A stretch of DNA of 55,571 nucleotides, the filler included, from Bipalium vagum (Eukaryota), in assembly GCA_037834085.1 (NCBI GenBank). It is 3 parts of 3 records of this genome, joined end to end, with 100 filler letters (N's around TTAATTAATTAA, not from the genome) between each part and the next. Parts side by side here need not be neighbours in the genome. Positions count along the whole stretch, not along the records: positions 1 to 16,514 come from JBBMKC010107319.1; 2 more parts are not named here. One strand, written 5' to 3'. The position numbers and the translations under genes were made by a program. The notes under the pieces were generated by a model that worked only from the letters and a program-made list of their open reading frames with translations, ran no database searches and was not told the origin of the DNA. The first letter of the stretch is position 1. Each line of letters starts with the position of its first letter. Below are positions 1 through 11,600 of the stretch, piece after piece.

Positions 1-599
1 TTACTAGTTTTCTATTAATGGTAACTTGATGTTACCATAATATTATTTTTCTTTAAAATATAATTTATAAGTAAATACATAAAAAATAAATGAATGAATA
101 TAATCACTACTAATACTAATACATGTTAATACTATATCTTATCTTATTTATTAATCCTAATATTCATATATGTCATTATTATACCTTTATTATGCTATTT
201 CATTTCCTTTTGTTTATTATTTATTATTATTATTTAATTATCGTTTTATTTTTAATATTTTATTAATCAGTCAAAATCGATTTTTCTTTTAATACATGTA
301 TTATATCGAATAAAAAGGCAATACAATGCCACGAATAAAAGTAATACAATAATACAACATTAAGGATCACTACAGGATGTCAAATGTTTCAGTTAAAGAA
401 TCACAAATATATAGAAAGGATGTCACATGTTTCAATTCACTAATCACCTGGAGGGATTGGGACTGACGGAACCGATGGTGATGGTTTTGATAGATTGGTT
501 GGATTCGGTCGTAGTCTCCACAACTATACTGACAAAATTTATTTATTTTCTTGTAAAAAATAAATGAAATAACATTTATTTAGACAATTTTTATTACAA

Positions 600-800
600 A
601 AATGAAGTTTTTTTCTCAAATACATTTGGGTACAATTTAATCTTCTTCTTGAATGCAAATAACCTGTTATTGAAAAATCTTTCAGAGTTTCTATAGGTTG
701 CAGGAACAGACAGCACTTAGATACTTTTCTTAAAAATTAAGGAAAATACTTCGTTTTTAATCCATAAAAATTTTCATCAAAATTTCCCGTTGAACAATTT
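600..800 (-). mobile_element. Decayed hAT-superfamily transposase C-terminal (dimerisation domain) fragment
   Basis: Minus strand reads KYLS..LSVPATYRNSERFFNN across frameshifts, matching the hAT dimerisation motif L-S-x-P-A-T-S-x-x-S-E-R-x-F-S. Boundaries approximate. Confidence 0.5.
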
Positions 801-1590
801 CTAAAACCAAATTAATCTCTTTGGTCAAAGGCTATTCTTTCAAGAATATATCAGGTTTCTCAAATTTCCTATTTTTTGCATTAGACTCAATAGATTCTTG
901 TTTTGATGTTTGATATCTAGTGTAAGCTGTTTAATAATAAATTGATCATTTTAAAAAAATCTTGATAATCTTCTTGGTGATGGGCCAGATGCCTTTTAAG
1001 TGCTGTATTGTGCTTGTCTTTAGGTCAAAATGTTATCTATTATATCATTTTTAGAAAATTAAATAAGAAATATATATGTTCGCTTACGGTTAATAAATTG
1101 AAAATCAAGAATAATATTACTGTAATTCTAACTGATTAAGTCTAAGTCATGACCTATATTAAAATTACAATTAGGTCGGTATTTGACCGACTTACATCAT
1201 TGGTGATAATAAATGTAGAAAATAGAATAAAAGAAAAGGATAGATATGATTCTTCGTCAATTCTCATGACAGGAAATATTTGAACATTAAAAATTTGAAT
1301 TTGAAGATGTTTAAAAATTTTAAAAAATCTTAAATGAAATGGTAATATTAAAAAAACGTGTTAGGTTTTTAAAACGCACAAACCCTAAAGATCGTGAGTG
1401 ATAATAATAATAATAAAACTACTAATAATTATTAAAAATGTTCTTTTACTATAATAAAATAATATTTATAATAATAATTTATCAAAATCTTGCAGTCGAG
1501 ATAATGATATATTTATATAAATCAATTAATATTACAAAAATAAAATATTATTATTTATTATAAATTATTATTTTTTTACTAACTTTACTA

Positions 1591-2200
1591 AACTTTATCT
1601 CGGCGTGAAGATAAAGTTAGAATTTATTGGCTATTAGTGAAAATAACCGTCTACGGCTATTTAGAAAGACGCTATCTCCAGAAATTTGACCAAGATATTG
1701 AAGTTGAACTCTGAGAGAGCATTTTCAATTCAATTCAAGTTCGAGGAAAGATTAATGGATGAGCAATTCAAGAAGATTTTATCCATAATTTTTATTTTAT
1801 TGATGACTAAGCAAAAGGATTTCGCAATGGGATCCAGGGATCTTGAGAATCATCAGGTGACCTGCAAATGACCAGATACACACTGTCGCTCCGGGTGAGA
1901 ATATTTTTGATTTTTCTTGTTTTTCATTTCTCTTACATTTTATTCTAATTTTATTTTGTTTTAATTACATTAAAATTTGTTTTAATCATATATTGTTTCA
2001 TTGTTCATTTGTGTTTTATTATTAACTTGATGATTATTAACATTGATTTTTGATTATTGGGAATCGATTATAAACCTTATTCAGACATTTAATCAGTTTT
2101 AATTCTTTGAATTTTCAGAAATTTTATTTTGATTGGTGTTACTGCATGTGATTTTGTTTTAAGAATAATAAAGTTTTATTGTGATTGTTTTGATTCAATT
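1591..2200 (+). repeat. Decayed copy (A) of an LTR-like interspersed repeat, homologous to 15325-15851 in opposite orientation
   Basis: Collinear shared blocks with the reverse complement of 15325-15851: tatctcggcgtg.agata; ctacg.ctat...agacg.ctat; ggattt.gcaa.ggga.ccag.ga.cttg.gaa; tgtcgctc..ggtgaga, then a T-rich tail. Right boundary approximate. Confidence 0.6.
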
Positions 2201-2697
2201 TGGGGTGTAAATAGAGCTAAGGCTTTATTTTGGAAGTTTAAATTTATGTAGCTGTAAAAGTAAAACAAGCACAACATTAGAAAGTGAAAAGTTTGTGGTG
2301 ACAAACTAAAGTTACATATTTCGATTAAGGAAAATAGTAAAAAATGAATTTTCATTTTTAAGGATAAAATAAATTATTTTTAATTTTATTAACAATTACT
2401 TTGAATAAAATATTCATATTTTTTGACTTTTAAAAGTAAATGTTAAATTTATTTTATAAAAAGCCTTAAGTAGCATAAACATTGTTATTTTAAAAAATTC
2501 AAAATGTCTTGTTATTTTTTTTATATTTTTGTTTATAATTGAGAAAGTTAATTATCATATTTAATGATCTGATATCGTTCCTCTATTAGTAAAACTTTAC
2601 AATTGTTCAAAGAGAGAGGTGGAGTTAATTTTAAAAAATTAAAAATCATCAATTATTATAGGAAAATTTTGAAAAATATTTGTTTTTGAATTTAGAA

Positions 2698-5600
2698 ATG
2701 GAAAAATTTATTATTAGAGATCATCCAAATAATCAATTGGATAATACTAAAACTGAAGAACTATTGGATTTTGTTGAGGGAGAAATGACTTTTGCAATAT
2801 TGAAACCTAATATCATAAAGAATAATATAATGGGAAAAGTATTAGACCGGTTGAAAGAAGAACATCTTGATATAGTCAAACAAGAAATTAGGAATCTTAC
2901 AAAACAAGAAGTTTTACAATTATGTCATAATTATGAAAAAAATAAAGATGAAATGGTTCAACAAATGACTTCTGGCAAGTGTTGCATTATTGCTTTGAAA
3001 TCAGAATTTTCCAATCCCGTTTTACATTTGAAAGAATTGACAGATCCAACAGATACGGGAATTCAAAAAAATACCGAGGAAAATAATAAGAGAATGAATG
3101 AGATAAAAGATTTGCAAAATAAATATTCGTCTGCTTCTGGGATTTCATCGATTAATTCAATTAATTTATCTCCCGAGTCATTGTCTAAAAGACTTGATAA
3201 AATAATGGATTCTGATAATAAATCTATAAGTAATCCAGATAATGTCAAATCAATTTTTGAAATTTATGATTTAAGAAATAAAATTAATGAGGCTGAAGCA
3301 AATAATGAAATTATAAAATGTATCTGGATCACGTTTCCTGAATTGGAAATTAAAAAATCCGAAAAAGGCATAAATTTTCAGTCAAAAACAATTCTTAACC
3401 CAGACATTTTAAAATCTATCTCTATACCGGAACAATATCAAAAACCAATTGGTTTATTTCAATCAAATAATGAAACATTAAATGAAATATGGATAAAGTT
3501 TCCTGAATTAATTTTGAAAAAGTCACATAAAGGAAAAGATTCTGAGTTAACAGTCTTAGCGAATCCAGGAAATCTCCAAAAGATCTATAATAATGTTATA
3601 TTTCAAAAAGGAATTATTACAAAAAAATACTATGGTGAATCTTTCAAATCGATTTTTATAAATCCTCCGAAATTGGTTTTCAAAAAAAAAGATGAAGCCA
3701 ATAATTTTGATACTATAGAAATATTTAATTTGGATAGTCTAAGAGCAATTTTTGGAATGCAGGAATTTCAAGAACAACTTCATTCGGCTGAAACAAGAGG
3801 TGAAATTTTAAAATCTATTTGGATAAATTTTCCTGATGATTTGAAGTCAAATGGGTTGGTGGATTATGATTCCATGAAAGCCTTTAATCAAGATAGTTTA
3901 AGAATACTTTGTAAAATGAAAGAATTTCAAAATGAAGTCAGTTCCTCTGAATTACAAATTGGATCTCTAAAATCAATTTACATAATATTTCCTGTTATGA
4001 TGTTTAAAAAGAATATTGACAATAAAAGTGATTCTGAAACAAGTATCACACTTAATTCCAGTAGTTTAAAAGCTATTTACAGAATGGAAGAATTTCAAAA
4101 AGAAGTAAGTTCTCAGGTGGAGTCCTTAAAATCAGTTTCTTTAACTTTTCCTGAATTGATATTCAAAAACTCCGAACAGTCAAAAGAATCTGTAAAATCA
4201 TTTCTAGTAAGTCCAAGTAATTTAAATTCTATATATGGATCACAGGAATTTCAAAGTATAACCAATTCAGTCTTATCACAAGCGGAATCAATAAAATCTA
4301 TACAAATAACGTTACCTCAACTGATACTGAAAAGTGTTGAAAAAACAGAACAAACAGAAATTAAATTTATAATAAACCCAGATTTTTTAAGTAATATATA
4401 TAGGGCATCTGATTTCCAAAAGAAAATCAAATCAGCTGCTTCACGTGGTGAGATATTAAACTCTATTTGTATGACATTTCCTGAAATGGTATTCAAAAAA
4501 GCGGGCAAGTTTAAAGATTCCAATATTAAAGCTGCTCTTAATCCAATTATTCTAAAAACGTTATATGAAACTAAAGAATTTCAAAAGGCAATTTATTCAA
4601 TTGATTCTTTGAAGTCGATATTTAAAACTTTTTCTAATAAAACAAAGACACCTGAGAAAATTAAAAAATCAGATATTAAAACACTAATTAAGGAAAAGAA
4701 AGTTATCAATGAGAATGTGAAATCAGTGTTTATTACATTTCCGAATTTGGTTATCAAAAAATCTGACGGAGTCAAGGAATCGGAAACTGAAATCACTCTT
4801 AACCCAGAAATTTTACGAACAATATACGGAATGAAAGAATTACAAAAAGAAATTCATTCAATTAATTCGAAGGATGAGATCCTGAGATGTGTTTCTATAA
4901 ATTTTCCTACATTGGAATTACATACATCTGATAATTCTAAGAAATCTGAAACTAGAGTTATTGTTAACATGGGAATTCTGAAACAAATTTATGAAATGCA
5001 GGAAATTCAAAAAAGAATGTTATTAGCTAAATCACGTAGAGAGTCTTTCAAATCTATTTACTTGCCTTTTCCTAAATTGGAATTTTATAAATTTGAAAGT
5101 TCCAAAGATTTGATTACTAAAACCATAACTAATCAAAATGGTTTAAGATCAATTTATGGAATACAAGAATTTCAAGAAAAAATTCATTCTATTCAAACAT
5201 CAGATAACGCTGTGAAATCTGTTTTGATAACATTTCATGATGACTCGAACACCACAAGATCTTTGGATTTTGATCATCAACAAGCTATGAAGCAAGACTG
5301 CTTAAAAGAACTTTGCAATATAAAGGAATTTCCTAAAGAAGAAAATTCATTAGAGCCTAAAGTTGAATATTTAAGATCAATTAATGTAAAATTTCCTGAA
5401 ATGTTGTTTAAAAATCCATATAGAAATATTGATTCACGGTCAAAGGTTGCACTTAACTCTAAAAGCTTGAAATTAATTTACAGAATCGAAGAAGTTCAGA
5501 AAGCAATCCATTCTATGGAATCTAAGGGACAATCTTTAGAATCTATTTCGATAACATTTCCGGAATTAGTGATAAAAAAGTCATACCAGAATAAGGAGTA

Positions 5601-8600
5601 TGAAACTAAAATCATATTTAATCCTAATTATTTAACGAGAATTTCCGAAACAATTGAAATCCAAAATGAAATAAATCGGGTTAATTCTAATGGTCAGCAT
5701 TTGAAATCTATTCTTGTAACATTTCCTCAATTGGGTTTCAATATTAACAATTCAGAAAATAAAACAATGCTTAATCCACATATTTTAGAAGACATTTTTG
5801 TGACCAAAGAATTTCAGAAAGAAATGTTTTTAGCTAAGTCACGAGATGAGTCTCTGAAATCGATCTTGATAATTTTTCCTGAGTTAGTTTTCATGAAAGA
5901 TGGAGTGTCTAGTGGTTCGGAAATTAAATTTTATATTAATCCCCGTATCCTAAGATCAGTATACGAAATTCAAGATTATCATAAAATTATTGATATATCT
6001 CTAACAAGTAGTAAATTACTGAAAGCAATGTGGATAACGTTTCCAGAATTAATATCAAGAACAAATAAAGATTCCGAGAAAAAAGTTATTCTTAATCCAG
6101 ATTATTTGAAATCGATTTATGTAATGCAAGATTTCAAAAAATTAATTAGTTCAATGGAAATTCACGGAAAATCATTGAAATCGATGTATATAAATTTTCC
6201 TAAATTGGTTTTAGAGTCGTATGATCTAGAAAAAAATTATGAAGAAATAGCCATACAGAATCCGGATAAATTGCAAACTATTTATGACATGGAAGACTTT
6301 CAAAATGGAATCATTTCAGCAAAATCACGCGGAGAGTCTCTTAAATCCATTTGTGTACATTTTCCGAAATTGGAGTATTGTAAATCTGGCCAATTCAGAA
6401 GTTCAGTTACTAAGCTAATAATTTGTCAAAATAGTTTAAGATTAATTTATGAAATGCAGGAATTTCAAGAAAAGCTTTATTCAGCAAAAGTAAGAGGTGA
6501 AGTTTTAAAATCTGTTTTGATAACATTCCCTCATAGTCCAAATAAAATTAGATCTTTGGATCTTGATCTTAAACAGGCCATTAAGCAAGATAGCTTAAAA
6601 GAAGTTTACAAAATGCAAGAATTCAAAAACGCTATTAATTCTTCTAAATTACAAGCGGAAGATTTACATTCTATTTTAATAACTTTTCCGGAAATGGAGT
6701 TCAAGAAAACTGATGATCTCATTAATTTTGATAACAAAGTTGTGCTCAATCCAGACTATTTAAAAGAAGTATTTAAAATGGAAAAATTTCATGAAAACAT
6801 CATTTTAGCTGAATCTCGAGGTGAAACCATAAAATCTATTTCAATAAACTTTCCTGAAATGATTTTAAAAAGGTTTAATCAAGATCAAAATGATGAGACC
6901 AAAGTTGCTCTTGATCCAGATAGCTTAAGAGCAGTTTATGGCATGAAAAACTTTCAAAACAGAATTAACTCAATTGAAGCAAAAGATGAATCTTTAAAGT
7001 CATATTTGATAAAGCTATCGGAAATTGGGTTCGTAGGGAAAAACAAAAACGGCGATTTTGTGTCTAATGTAATTGTTAATCCGGAAAGTTTACGAACACT
7101 TTATTTAATGCCCGAACTTCGACAGACAATCCATTCAGCTGAATCATGTGGTAAAGCTTTGAAGTCGATTTGGATACTTTTTCCTGAAATGGTTTTTCAG
7201 AAAAATGATGGAGATCAACATTCTGAAAATAAAGTTACATTAGGGCCAGATTTTTTGAAAGCAGTGCTTGAAATGCAAGAATTTCGTAACGGAATTAACT
7301 CAATTGGCTCAAATAATGAGTGTTTAAGATCAATTAATATAACATTTCCACAATTGGTATTGATAAAATCAAACGAGATTAAGGAATATGAAACTAAAGT
7401 TCTACTTAGATCAGAAAATTTACAAAATATTTATGAAATGCAGAAATTTCAAAAAGAAATAAAATCAATTGAATCGAGCGGTGATAGAATTAAGTCAGTT
7501 TTGATAACGCTTCCTGAACTGATAATTGAGGAAGTCACAAAAGGCAAGAATTCTGATATCAAGTTCATACTGAATCCAGACGATTGTAAAAAAATTTACG
7601 ATATGCCAGATTTTCAAAAAGAAATTATCTCAGCTGAATCCCGCTGTGAAACACTAAAAGCCATTTTAATCAATTTTCCCAAAATAAAATTTAAAAACTT
7701 TGATCAAGAAAAAGATATCTTGACTAATTACATTGTTCATCCTGGTAGCTTAAGGAAATTGTACGAAATGGAAGAATTTCAAGAACAAGTTTATTTAGCT
7801 AAATCACGAGGTGAAGTTTTAAAATCGATTTTGATAACTGTTCCTGATGAGCCGAAGTTCAAACGATCTGTGGATCTTAATCTAAAACAAGAAATTAAAT
7901 ACGATAGTTTAAAAGTATACGGAATGCATGAATTTCAGAAGGCAATCAATTCATCGAAATCACTTTTATCTTTATCATATTTTATCCATATAAAATTTCC
8001 AGAAATGAAATTCAAAAAGAATGGTGACCTCAAAGATTCTGATACTAAAGTCATTCTTAATTCGGATTGCTTGAAAGAAATATACAAACTACCAGAGTTT
8101 CAAAATATGATTAATGTAGATTCATCTGTTAACGATTCTTCTAAATCTGTTTTGATAACCTTTCCTGAATTATCAATAAAAATGACTAACCAGGTTAATG
8201 ATTCTGATAAAATAATAACCTTTAATCCAAATAATTTGAGAAAAATTTCCGGATTTCAGGAATTAATAAAAGCTTTTCTTTCAGCTGAATCAAACGGAGA
8301 ATCTTTCAAATCAATTAACATAAAATTTCCTAAATTAATAATCACAAAAACCGAAGGATCTAAAGATTACGAAACTACGGTTGTTCTTAATCTGGATAGC
8401 ATAAGATCAATATATGAATCAGATGAATTTGAAAATTTGTCACTTGAATCGTTAAAATCAATTTCCATAAGATTTCCTGAATTGATTATAAAAAAGAGTA
8501 ATAAAGAAAAGTCAGTAGAGAAAAGAATTATTCTTAATCCAGAAAGCTTAGAGAAAATTTACGAATTACAAGAATTTCATGAAAAAATCAATTCACCTGA

Positions 8601-11600
8601 GTCTAGAGGTCAACTTTTGAAATCAATTTGTGTGAATTTTCCTGAACTGGTTATTAACTTTTCTGCCGATGACAAGGAAAGTGAAATTAAAATAATTCTT
8701 AGTTCAGAGGAGTTTACAGCCATATACGGAATGCCAGAATTTCAAAAGGAAATTTTTTTTGTGGAATTAAAGGGTGAGTCTTTGGAATCAGTTTCTGTAA
8801 GTTTTCCTACATTGATATTGCAAACATCTAATTCCAAAAAGGAGTTTGAAACTAAAGTAATACGTAACATGGGGATTTTGAAACAAATCTATGAAATGCA
8901 TGAATTACGAAAAGGACTTTTATCAGCAAAATCACGTGGAGAGTCTCTCAAATGTATTTTAGTGCCCTTTCCAATTTTGGAGTTCTATGAATCTGATAGA
9001 TCCAAAGGTTCGATTACTAAAGCCATAACTAGTCAATGTAGTTTAAGATCAATTTACAAAATGCAGGAATTTCAAGAAAAAAGTTTTTCAGTTGAAACCC
9101 AGGGTAAAGCTTTAAAATATACTTTGATTACAAATCAGGATAATTTAAAGTTTAAGGAACCTTTGAATTCTGATCTGAACAAATTAATTAGTGAAGATAG
9201 TTTAAAAATAATTTGCAAAATAAATGAATTTCAAAAAGATATGAATTCTTCTAGACTTCCTATCGAATCTGTAAAATCAATTATAATTACGTTTCCTGAA
9301 ATGATTTTTAAAAATATTGATACAAAAGCTGAATCCGAGACAAAGGTCATACTTAATTCTAATATCTTAAAGGTCATTTGTGGAATACCAGAATTTCAAA
9401 GCTTAGTGGACTCAATTGAATCACGGGGTGGAAAGCTAAAATCAATTTCTATAACGTTTCCAGAATTGGTGATAAAAAAGTCTAAAGAATTTGAAACTGA
9501 AATCACAATTAGTCCAGATGTTTTAAGTACAATTTGCGAAAATCAAGATTTTCAAAGTATTGTTAATTTAATTGAATCTCAGAGTGAGTGCCTAAAATCA
9601 ATTATGGTAAGGTTTCCTGAATTGATAATCAAAAAGTCCAATCAACGCAAGGAAGAAACTGAAACTAAAGTTATTCTTAACCCAAATAGTTTCAAAAATA
9701 TTTATGCATTGCAAGATTTTCGAAATGAAATTAATACAATTGAATCTGAAGTTGAATGTTTGAAATCATTTTTGATAAAGTTTCCTAAAATGAGTTTTAA
9801 CAAATTTAATCTTGAGAAGAGTGAAAATGCAAAGGTCATAATTAATCCAAGTACTTTGACAGGCATTTATAAATCAAAAGAGTTCCAAAAAACATTAATT
9901 TCAATCCAATCTAACAACGGGTCCTTAAAATCAACTTTATTAACTTTTCCTGTCATAAAGTTAAAAAAGTTGAAACAATCAAAGGATTCTGAATTAAAAA
10001 TCATTATTAACCCAAATAATTTAAAAGAACTTTATGAAATGAACGAATTGCAGAAAGAAAAATTTTTGATAGAATTTCGGGGTGAATCTATAAAATCCAT
10101 ATTGGTAAATTTTCCTACAATAACGTTGAAAAAAACAGATCAATCAAACGACTCTGAAACCAAAGCTATCCTTAATGCACAAAGCTTGAAAAAAATCTAT
10201 GAAATGCAAACTTTTCAAAAGGGAATTTATTCTGCTGAATTGCGCGGTGAGTTTCTTAAATCAATTATTATTAATTTACCAAAATTGATGTACAAAAATA
10301 ATAATAACACAGATAGCTCTCTAATTACAAATATAATTAAACTGAGAAGTTTAAAATCTATTTACGAAATGCAAGAATTTCAAGAAAAAATTATTTCAGC
10401 TGAATTAAGTGGTGAAACCTTGGACTTTGTTTTGATAACTGTTCCTGGAAATCAGGATTACATGGGATCTTTGGATAGTAAGGAAGATAGCTTAAAAGGA
10501 GCTTGCAAAATTAAAGAATTTCAAAAGATAATGAATTCATTTGAATCAAAAAATGGACAATTTGAATCTATCAATGTATCTTTCCCTGAATTAGTTTTCA
10601 AAAAATCTAACTATGAAAATGATACCGAGACTAAAGTTTCACTTAATCCAAATAGTTTAAGAGAAATTTATGGTATGCAGGTATTTCAAAACGCAATTAT
10701 TTCATCCGAAAATGGAGGAGAATCTTTAAAATCTCTTTGTATAACGTTTCCGGAAATTATTCTAAAGAAATCAAACAATGGTAAAGAATCTGAGTCCAGA
10801 ATTTTACTAAACCCAGAAAGTATAAAAGATATTTATGAATTACAAGAATTTCAAGAAGCAATTTATTTAGCAGAGGCAGAAAATATGTCCATAAAATCAA
10901 TCTATATAAATTATCCTCAACTTACTTATAAGAAGACCAATGACTTCAGCAATCAGCAGAAAATTATTATTTTGAATCCAGATAGCCTAAGATCAATTTA
11001 TGAAATACAAGATTATCATAATCAAATTGACTTGGCCAAATCTCGTGGCGAATCCTTAAAATCAATAAATTTTAATTTTCCTAAGCTTGAGTTTAAAAAG
11101 ATTGATCAATCTGTGTACCCTGAATCTACGGGGATGCAAATATCAGATAATTTAAGACCAGTTTTTTTAATGCAGAGTTTACCAAATGGAATTCAGTCAG
11201 CTGATTCTCGCAGCGAGGCTCTCAAATCAATAAACCTTACTTTTCCTGATTTGGTGGTTAAAAAAGAGAATCAATCCATAGAATCTGAGACTACAGTTAT
11301 TCTGATCCCAGAAACAATATATCCTGATGAGAAAAATTCGTTTGTTAATCAATTCAAGACCGCTGGTCTTAAGATTGTCAATCAGGTCAATATACCAATC
11401 TTAAAAAATGATATAAATTTTTTATATTCAGATTTGAGCTTTAAAAAAAATGTGAGTGATGAAAAAATTAAAGAGCTTCAAAATTCTAATTTTGATATTT
11501 TCATGGTCAAAGGAAATAATTGTGTAAAAATAGTAAATTGTATGTTAGAAGTAAATTTTCCAGAAAGCATAAATAGAGAGTACAGCAAATTACTTGACAG

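Follow-up and report, generated by a model that had tools for sequence, protein, structure and literature searches.

The window analysed here, a stretch of 55,571 nucleotides from Bipalium vagum (assembly GCA_037834085.1) in which three parts of three records are joined end to end with filler letters, carries in its first part (positions 1 to 16,514, from JBBMKC010107319.1) a gene for a predicted multi-NDK protein whose first two NDK domains are separated by an array of 49 tandem units, each of them akin to the junction between two NDK domains. We hold it highly probable that this array is a lineage-specific repeat family, derived from a ciliary-type (group II) multi-NDK protein by amplification of a sub-domain fragment. 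Such amplification is the presumed source of repeat proteins in general, but natural examples that still show both the parent and its product are, to our knowledge, rare and mostly ancient. Here, a single genome holds the intron-bearing parent junction, the amplified array, and conventional relatives at a greater distance; the amplified segment is delimited to the codon, across a domain boundary, and the history that we propose for it (intron loss, then unit expansion, then block expansion) would still be readable in the sequence. Because a progenitor-type junction survives alongside the array, the case is unusually well documented. Since the principle of fragment amplification is already established (PMC5074805, PMC6805158), what is new is a repeat family and an architecture inside a known protein family.

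The gene occupies the sole open reading frame (ORF) of at least 100 aa within positions 1–16514, which runs from 2680 to 12519 on the plus strand (3279 codons; amino acid positions below are counted along this frame), in a region with a G+C content of 25–31%. The ATG at 2698 is its probable start, as it is preceded by an upstream in-frame stop and has A at −3 and G at +4. The following features were delimited:

2698..12519, plus strand: single-exon gene model (ATG at 2698, stop at 12517–12519, 3273 aa; the open frame begins at 2680)
about 30 residues before NDK1, plus strand: N-terminal leader, from the translation
2776..3054 (aa 33–125), plus strand: NDK1, truncated, from beta1 to the start of the Kpn loop (Pfam NDK, sister gene)
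3055..3234, plus strand: spacer, low-complexity sequence and a degenerate partial unit (weak match of the unit hidden Markov model [HMM] at aa 137–166, translation)
3235..11307, plus strand: array of 49 units, or about 50 with the composite counted (repeat search, unit HMM, hhalign)
3889..10482, plus strand: five full 8-unit higher-order blocks (DNA repeat spacing, unit-pair offsets, colinear block alignment)
5134–5292, 6427–6585, 7741–7899, 9034–9192, 10342–10482, and also 3730–3888, plus strand: variant eighth units
11284..11664, plus strand: NDK2, degenerate, whose beta1 doubles as the end of the last unit
11683..12081, plus strand: NDK3, full-length (Pfam NDK positions 1–132), with Tyr at the catalytic His position
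12082..12516, plus strand: C-terminal tail of about 145 aa, without a Pfam match

A direct-repeat search returned families of 21–28 copies, spaced mostly by 165 nt or multiples of it and 60–80% identical in DNA, and an iterated unit HMM gave 50 unit matches over aa 173–2863. When the P of P-x-S-L-[KR] is taken as the first residue of each unit, the array comprises 49 units at 3235–11307, one of which is a 1.5-unit composite; most measure 165 nt (55 aa), and each would combine the C-terminal segment of NDK with a linker of 13 aa and the beta1 strand of the following NDK domain. This agrees closely with an earlier reading of the sequence (hereafter the original prediction), which had placed about 50 units at 3232–11310 and whose quoted unit details also hold, its unit 25 being unit 24 in the present numbering. 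The array was not reported by Tandem Repeats Finder, because the unit copies are too diverged. An independent Logan contig, drawn from the one public run that holds this DNA (and which is probably the assembly's own source), covers 2600–8500 with no differences, no gaps, and an even depth of about 26, so the array is not an assembly artefact produced by collapse or expansion. Read-mapping joints were considered as variants and rejected, as they are cross-matches between units within one contig. As to length, the sole large anomaly of the array is the composite unit at 4543–4803, which reaches 87 aa with an internal Lys-rich insertion of about 32 aa.

The domains on both sides of the array are incomplete in complementary fashion, as the original prediction had also read. 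NDK1 (Pfam NDK model positions 1–93 at 2782–3060 in the genome search) ends at P-T-D (aa 123–125) and lacks the His-bearing strand and the last helix; then comes the spacer of about 60 residues, which begins with P-E-S-L and finishes in a beta1-like stretch; and the last unit continues into NDK2 without a break in the translation, its end being NDK2 beta1. In other words, NDK1 runs up to the unit start, n units follow, and NDK2 resumes from just after beta1, a topology explained by a tandem duplication from P-[DE]-S-L-R to beta1 (ending in P-[DE]), which would leave exactly that arrangement. Pfam NDK (PF00334) matches the ORF at aa 3002–3134 (147 bits, cut-off 27), with three stretches, and the Pfam scan of the ORF gave no credible family besides NDK.

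The kinship of the units with NDK was assessed by comparing an alignment of 48 units with an alignment of 10 NDK C-terminal segments taken from contiguous frames of the same genome, the sister gene described below being excluded. The two profiles align in hhalign with a probability of 95.1, a P of 3.4e-8, and a score of 37.5, when 300 column shuffles of the unit alignment reach a mean of 8.2 (standard deviation 1.9) and a maximum of 16.6, and the reversed profile 4.9. Unit columns 1–39 fall, ungapped, on S-L-R-A-x-Y-G ... N-x-x-H-G-S-D-S ... R-E-I-x-x-F-F-P, which bears out the register with the NDK C-terminus that had been proposed from the sequence. A search of 177,635 PDB sequences with the unit profile placed NME5 orthologues at ranks 2–4 among the five matches listed, and all three matches fall on P-D-S-L-R-A-I-Y-G. 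As for other repeat families, a better match to which had been named in the original prediction as evidence to the contrary, none came forward: Pfam repeat models gave scattered chance matches only, and among 1.84 billion representative proteins a search with the unit profile brought up no relative. The sole library match to that profile, P0001 (582 aa), was discarded as an unrelated protein with repeats of about 57 aa, in which five weak stretches had been summed. A word-index protein search with the 415-aa C-terminal part or with a conventional junction ORF gave no match, its low sensitivity making this no proof of absence, and a search of the literature turned up no NDK-derived repeat array.

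The strongest indication of where the unit comes from lies elsewhere in the assembly. Searching all of it (440 Mb, 272,664 contigs) with Pfam NDK, the unit alignment, and NDK1, we found an un-amplified sister gene whose parts lie on three short, AT-rich contigs (C258523, C191149, and C218908) and which has a complete NDK1, exactly one unit-like junction, then NDK2 and NDK3; its exons were compared one by one, by reference. C258523 holds two NDK1 exons, 52–54% identical to the NDK1 of the window gene and separated by an intron of about 47 nt, with the full Kpn loop up to ...T-E-P-E, then AG|gt. On C191149 lies a 75-nt exon (588–662) with an acceptor and a donor on its sides. On the minus strand of C218908, an exon leads from the last NDK helix via a 13-residue linker and beta1 into NDK2, followed by an intron of about 50 nt and NDK3, with 45–51% identity to the window gene. 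These contigs overlap (a stretch of 244 nt, at the end of C258523 and the start of C191149, is 96.7% identical between the two, and C191149 1613–1679 match the first 67 nt of reverse-complemented C218908 at 97%), and the splice phases agree across them, AG+C giving the Ser of P-E-S-L-R-A-I-Y-G and AG+A giving Arg. Scored on the unit model, the mini-exon yields 32.2 bits over positions 4–27 and the next exon 24.1 bits over positions 29–54, with about 45% identity onward into NDK2; since the two exons tile the unit model, the NDK1–NDK2 junction of the sister gene amounts to exactly one unit. The alignment to a conventional junction of the same genome, which the original prediction had put forward as a check, in this way yielded more than was expected of it, an un-amplified gene with a one-unit junction.

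The layout of this junction is not peculiar to the sister gene. The position, phase, and structure of the mini-exon (1+72+2 nt, 24 codons) are the same in conventional three-NDK genes on C101127 and C145944, and the phase of the following exon is identical too in these genes, of which the former is AT-rich and the latter has 48% G+C. Because it is common to the conventional three-NDK genes, a single junction with two introns represents the ancestral state. The window gene, for its part, has none of the five introns seen in the sister gene, its frame running on unbroken through each of those sites.

On this basis, we infer the following order of events. The ancestor would have been a three-NDK gene with a short linker between its first and second domains, their junction being coded by the 75-nt mini-exon and the beginning of the next exon. 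A duplicate of this gene would then have become intron-free, whether it originated as a processed copy or lost its introns by way of cDNA, and a 165-nt segment of the intron-less copy would have been duplicated in tandem, starting at the Kpn-loop P-[DE]-S-L-R, taking in the His strand, last helix, and linker, and reaching NDK2 beta1 (with its end P-[DE]). Intron loss would have come before amplification because the unit spans two ancestral intron sites and the window gene is intron-free. As P-E stands at both ends of the segment in the sister gene, this short microhomology may have seeded the first duplication. Unequal exchange would next have grown the segment to about eight units, and then the 8-unit blocks to about six copies, after which the copies would have diverged almost to synonymous saturation while staying in frame under moderate purifying selection. 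An amplification of this kind would leave NDK1 without its C-terminal third and NDK2 with a beta1 supplied by the last unit. The roughly 50-fold amplification anticipated by the original prediction stands in this scenario, refined into two stages and preceded by the loss of introns.

The two stages are suggested by the internal order of the array. Two DNA repeat families (D6 and D10) are spaced by 1293–1404 nt, that is, with an 8-unit period, and 25 of the 49 units have their most similar partner 8 units away or at a multiple of that distance (binomial P 8e-11). Five full blocks (3889–5292, 5293–6585, 6586–7899, 7900–9192, and 9193–10482), with partial blocks on either side, align colinearly at 38–40% identity and have position-specific signatures. 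In every eighth unit, another, partly acidic stretch takes the place of the linker and beta1, and this variant unit could act as a hinge between blocks. The closest pair of units is 81% identical in DNA, the mean proportion of synonymous differences between units is 0.61 (near synonymous saturation), and the ratio of nonsynonymous to synonymous rates (dN/dS) is 0.17–0.69 in the most similar pairs; these values, with the overall divergence of the units, indicate that the array is old and under moderate purifying selection. The best conserved unit positions are P35 (45 of 48 units), L4 (42 of 48), and F34 (39 of 48), when the catalytic His is kept in five of the 48 units and lost in the other 43.

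Structure prediction suggests that the fragment changed its fold when it became a repeat. AlphaFold2 was given four units with 12 non-overlapping rows (alignments made by MAFFT on overlapping windows slid out of register and were dropped), and its best model, with a predicted local distance difference test (pLDDT) of 76 and a predicted template modelling score of 0.64, shows each unit as helix-helix-strand-strand-strand. The low-confidence model of one 8-unit block, from which the secondary-structure pattern is the only thing we take, has the same succession of elements, with a variant eighth unit devoid of strands. When the models are mapped on NDK, the His strand falls where helix 2 ends and the last NDK helix corresponds to the first strand of the unit, and the hydrophobic residues that alternate at unit positions 30 (I), 32 (I/V), and 34 (F) fit a strand. 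The unit is accordingly predicted, with medium confidence, to have refolded into two helices and a three-stranded meander, the whole forming an elongated alpha/beta array. The two helices and beta element envisaged in the original prediction fit this secondary structure, at the level of a medium-confidence model. The structural searches that were also envisaged there gave no clear fold match, whether by Foldseek on the PDB, VIA-align wide, or an ESM Atlas shape search: the best matches stay at noise level (Foldseek E at least 0.01, template modelling score at most 0.32, best Z 5.2), and an ESM Atlas feature search returned generic NDK clusters only. The weak best match of the 4-unit model is to sheets of the sliding-clamp/Mago type (beta-alpha-beta-beta-beta), with an antiparallel sheet and helices on one face, a likeness of shape only, with no sequence relation.

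The sequence of NDK3 points to a ciliary-type (group II) ancestry of the gene. Among proteins of solved structure, those closest to NDK3 are the axonemal NME7 (E 2e-29), FAP67, TXNDC6, RSP23, and NME5, and its closest kin being axonemal NME5/NME7/NME9 rather than group I enzymes places it in group II, the ciliary group. The N-x-x-H-G-S-D motif of active enzymes is not intact in any of the three domains, NDK2 (which also has a 5-aa insertion) and NDK3 having Tyr for His and NDK1 being devoid of the segment. The loss of His in 43 of 48 units and its replacement by Tyr in NDK2 and NDK3 make the product most likely a non-catalytic structural protein, and our best reading is that of an elongated one, probably of cilia or flagella. 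If so, the ciliary NDK family would gain an unexpected architecture, a 3,273-residue non-catalytic form, and the predicted change of secondary structure would offer a natural, testable example of fragment reuse with refolding. One may go further and imagine that the fold switch (strand and helix in the sister, helix and strand in the array), together with a rod of strict 8-unit super-repeat with a hinge-like eighth unit and NDK-anchored ends, provides cilia or sperm flagella with a scaffold or ruler of regular period, an idea that we regard as speculative and rather unlikely.

Several points weigh against the derivation of the array from an NDK junction or against the refolding of its units. 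The single PDB matches of the unit profile are insignificant when each is taken alone (E 0.5–1). Half of the match that the original prediction expected of the unit, to the NDK C-terminus plus beta1, was recovered with the C-terminal part; the linker and beta1 half, compared by hhalign with two conventional junction exons alone, gave a P of 0.36, which is not significant, so that for the origin of this half we depend on the sister gene and on the unbroken passage of the last unit into NDK2. Pfam NDK matched none of the 48 single units at E up to 10, as is expected of a unit that is about a quarter of the domain: the unit is a repeat that derives from a fragment and is not itself an NDK domain. 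After the stop codon, neither a poly(A) remnant nor any other hallmark of a retrocopy was seen, and the gene model is read from genomic DNA alone. The sister gene is assembled from three contigs, with overlaps of 97% and not 100% and with exons read separately; the assembly, which is fragmented, may contain DNA of more than one organism, and it is conceivable that the contigs of the sister gene and of the window gene stem from two related organisms sampled together. Regarding the fold, the other four models of the 4-unit stretch have a pLDDT of 55–66, and the prediction for one 8-unit block (5 rows) failed, with a pLDDT of 40. Such models of medium confidence at best, together with the NDK register kept ungapped over 39 columns, leave room for units that derive from the NDK junction and yet retain the native His strand, last helix, and beta1, the array being then a chain of NDK-like sub-structures. 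However, a native core is impossible in a unit without beta2, beta3, and helices 1–3, the stretch that is a helix in NDK alternates its hydrophobic residues in the units and is made a strand by both models, and no NDK chain appears among the structural matches; we therefore think this conservative version unlikely, though it is the alternative to which we give the most weight.

Other alternatives bear on the origin itself. The failure of Pfam NDK on the units, in an AT-rich coding sequence that favours K/I/N/F/S-rich motifs, might suggest that the NDK likeness arose by chance, in an unrelated low-complexity expansion inserted between NDK domains. This is already contradicted by the present analysis, for the hhalign P lies far beyond the shuffle null, NME5 came up in an unbiased search, the genuine NDK mini-exon of the sister gene reaches 32 bits on the unit model within an exon structure common to conventional genes, and NDK1 is cut off exactly at the unit start; we find such a coincidence scarcely credible. 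Nearly as hard to sustain, in our opinion, is a history of reversed polarity, in which the array would be ancestral and the single junction of the sister would result from its collapse: unequal exchange can indeed shrink arrays as well, but the single junction with the same two introns is found in the sister and in conventional genes of two compositions, the array copy is the intron-free one, and no array-bearing protein was found among the 1.84 billion representatives. An intron-free gene known from genomic DNA, with a unit dN/dS just moderately below 1, could also be a decaying processed pseudogene or an otherwise non-functional gene, its array being tolerated junk. Against this, a stop-free frame of 9.8 kb at 27% G+C (3279 codons) has a chance of about 1e-132 given its composition, structural positions such as P35, L4, and F34 are conserved, and the near saturation of synonymous sites between units implies that the frame has been maintained for long; we thus deem a dead gene improbable, if somewhat less so than the two preceding scenarios. 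Amplification of a sub-domain fragment remains the reading that we prefer, and by a wide measure of belief.

Among known proteins, the group II axonemal NME8 (TXNDC3) and NME9 (TXNDC6) likewise have tandem NDK domains, some of them without the catalytic His, and conventional three-NDK genes with this layout of junction exons occur in the present genome. Unlike them, the 3279-aa ORF has no thioredoxin match (Pfam, E up to 1), its NDK1 is truncated, and NDK1 is set apart from NDK2 by about 2,700 residues of junction-derived repeats; no such array was found in papers on the family (PMC2978717 and PMC2777172 give background). The microtubule inner protein NME7/FAP67 is the best solved sequence match of NDK3, and the radial-spoke protein NME5/RSP23 the best non-chance match of the repeat profile, but both differ in being small, repeat-free proteins with one or two intact NDK domains and DM10 or DPY-30-like parts. 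As regards the mode of origin, the tetratricopeptide repeat (TPR) has been traced to a helical hairpin of ribosomal protein S20 (PMC5074805), where a sub-domain-sized fragment of a non-repetitive parent was similarly amplified into a repeat protein; that case is ancient and laboratory-reconstructed, whereas here the parent junction survives as a sister gene and the fragment crosses a domain boundary. New beta-propellers from single blades provide a recurrent and traceable amplification of a supersecondary element (PMC6805158), with the difference that blades keep their structure on amplification, while the unit of the window gene is predicted to change its own and implies no closed toroid.

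A few further observations concern the surroundings of these genes. Directly after NDK3, the window gene has a motif that the conventional gene on C145944 (1–3149) also has, with its third NDK domain. The latter contig stands out by its 48% G+C, against 24–33% for the other NDK contigs, and by ATT/AAT microsatellites at its start; it may come from a second organism in the sample or from a compositionally different part of the genome. Past its 67-nt match to C218908, C191149 continues with unrelated sequence (1680–4871), and in its 3′ part there is a further match to C258523, inverted and at 73–83%, which hints that a dispersed repeat or else an assembly bubble is present here. Downstream of the window gene, AT-rich short tandem repeats and an (ATT)n tract occupy 13820–14055, 15869–16133, and 16430–16509, and the G+C content climbs to 0.30–0.34 at 14500–16000 in the absence of any ORF of at least 100 aa, where short exons of a neighbouring gene are possible. 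Lastly, C216539 and C83405 bear, on separate contigs, two near-alike group I NDK genes with intact catalytic motifs, which could be paralogues or haplotypes.

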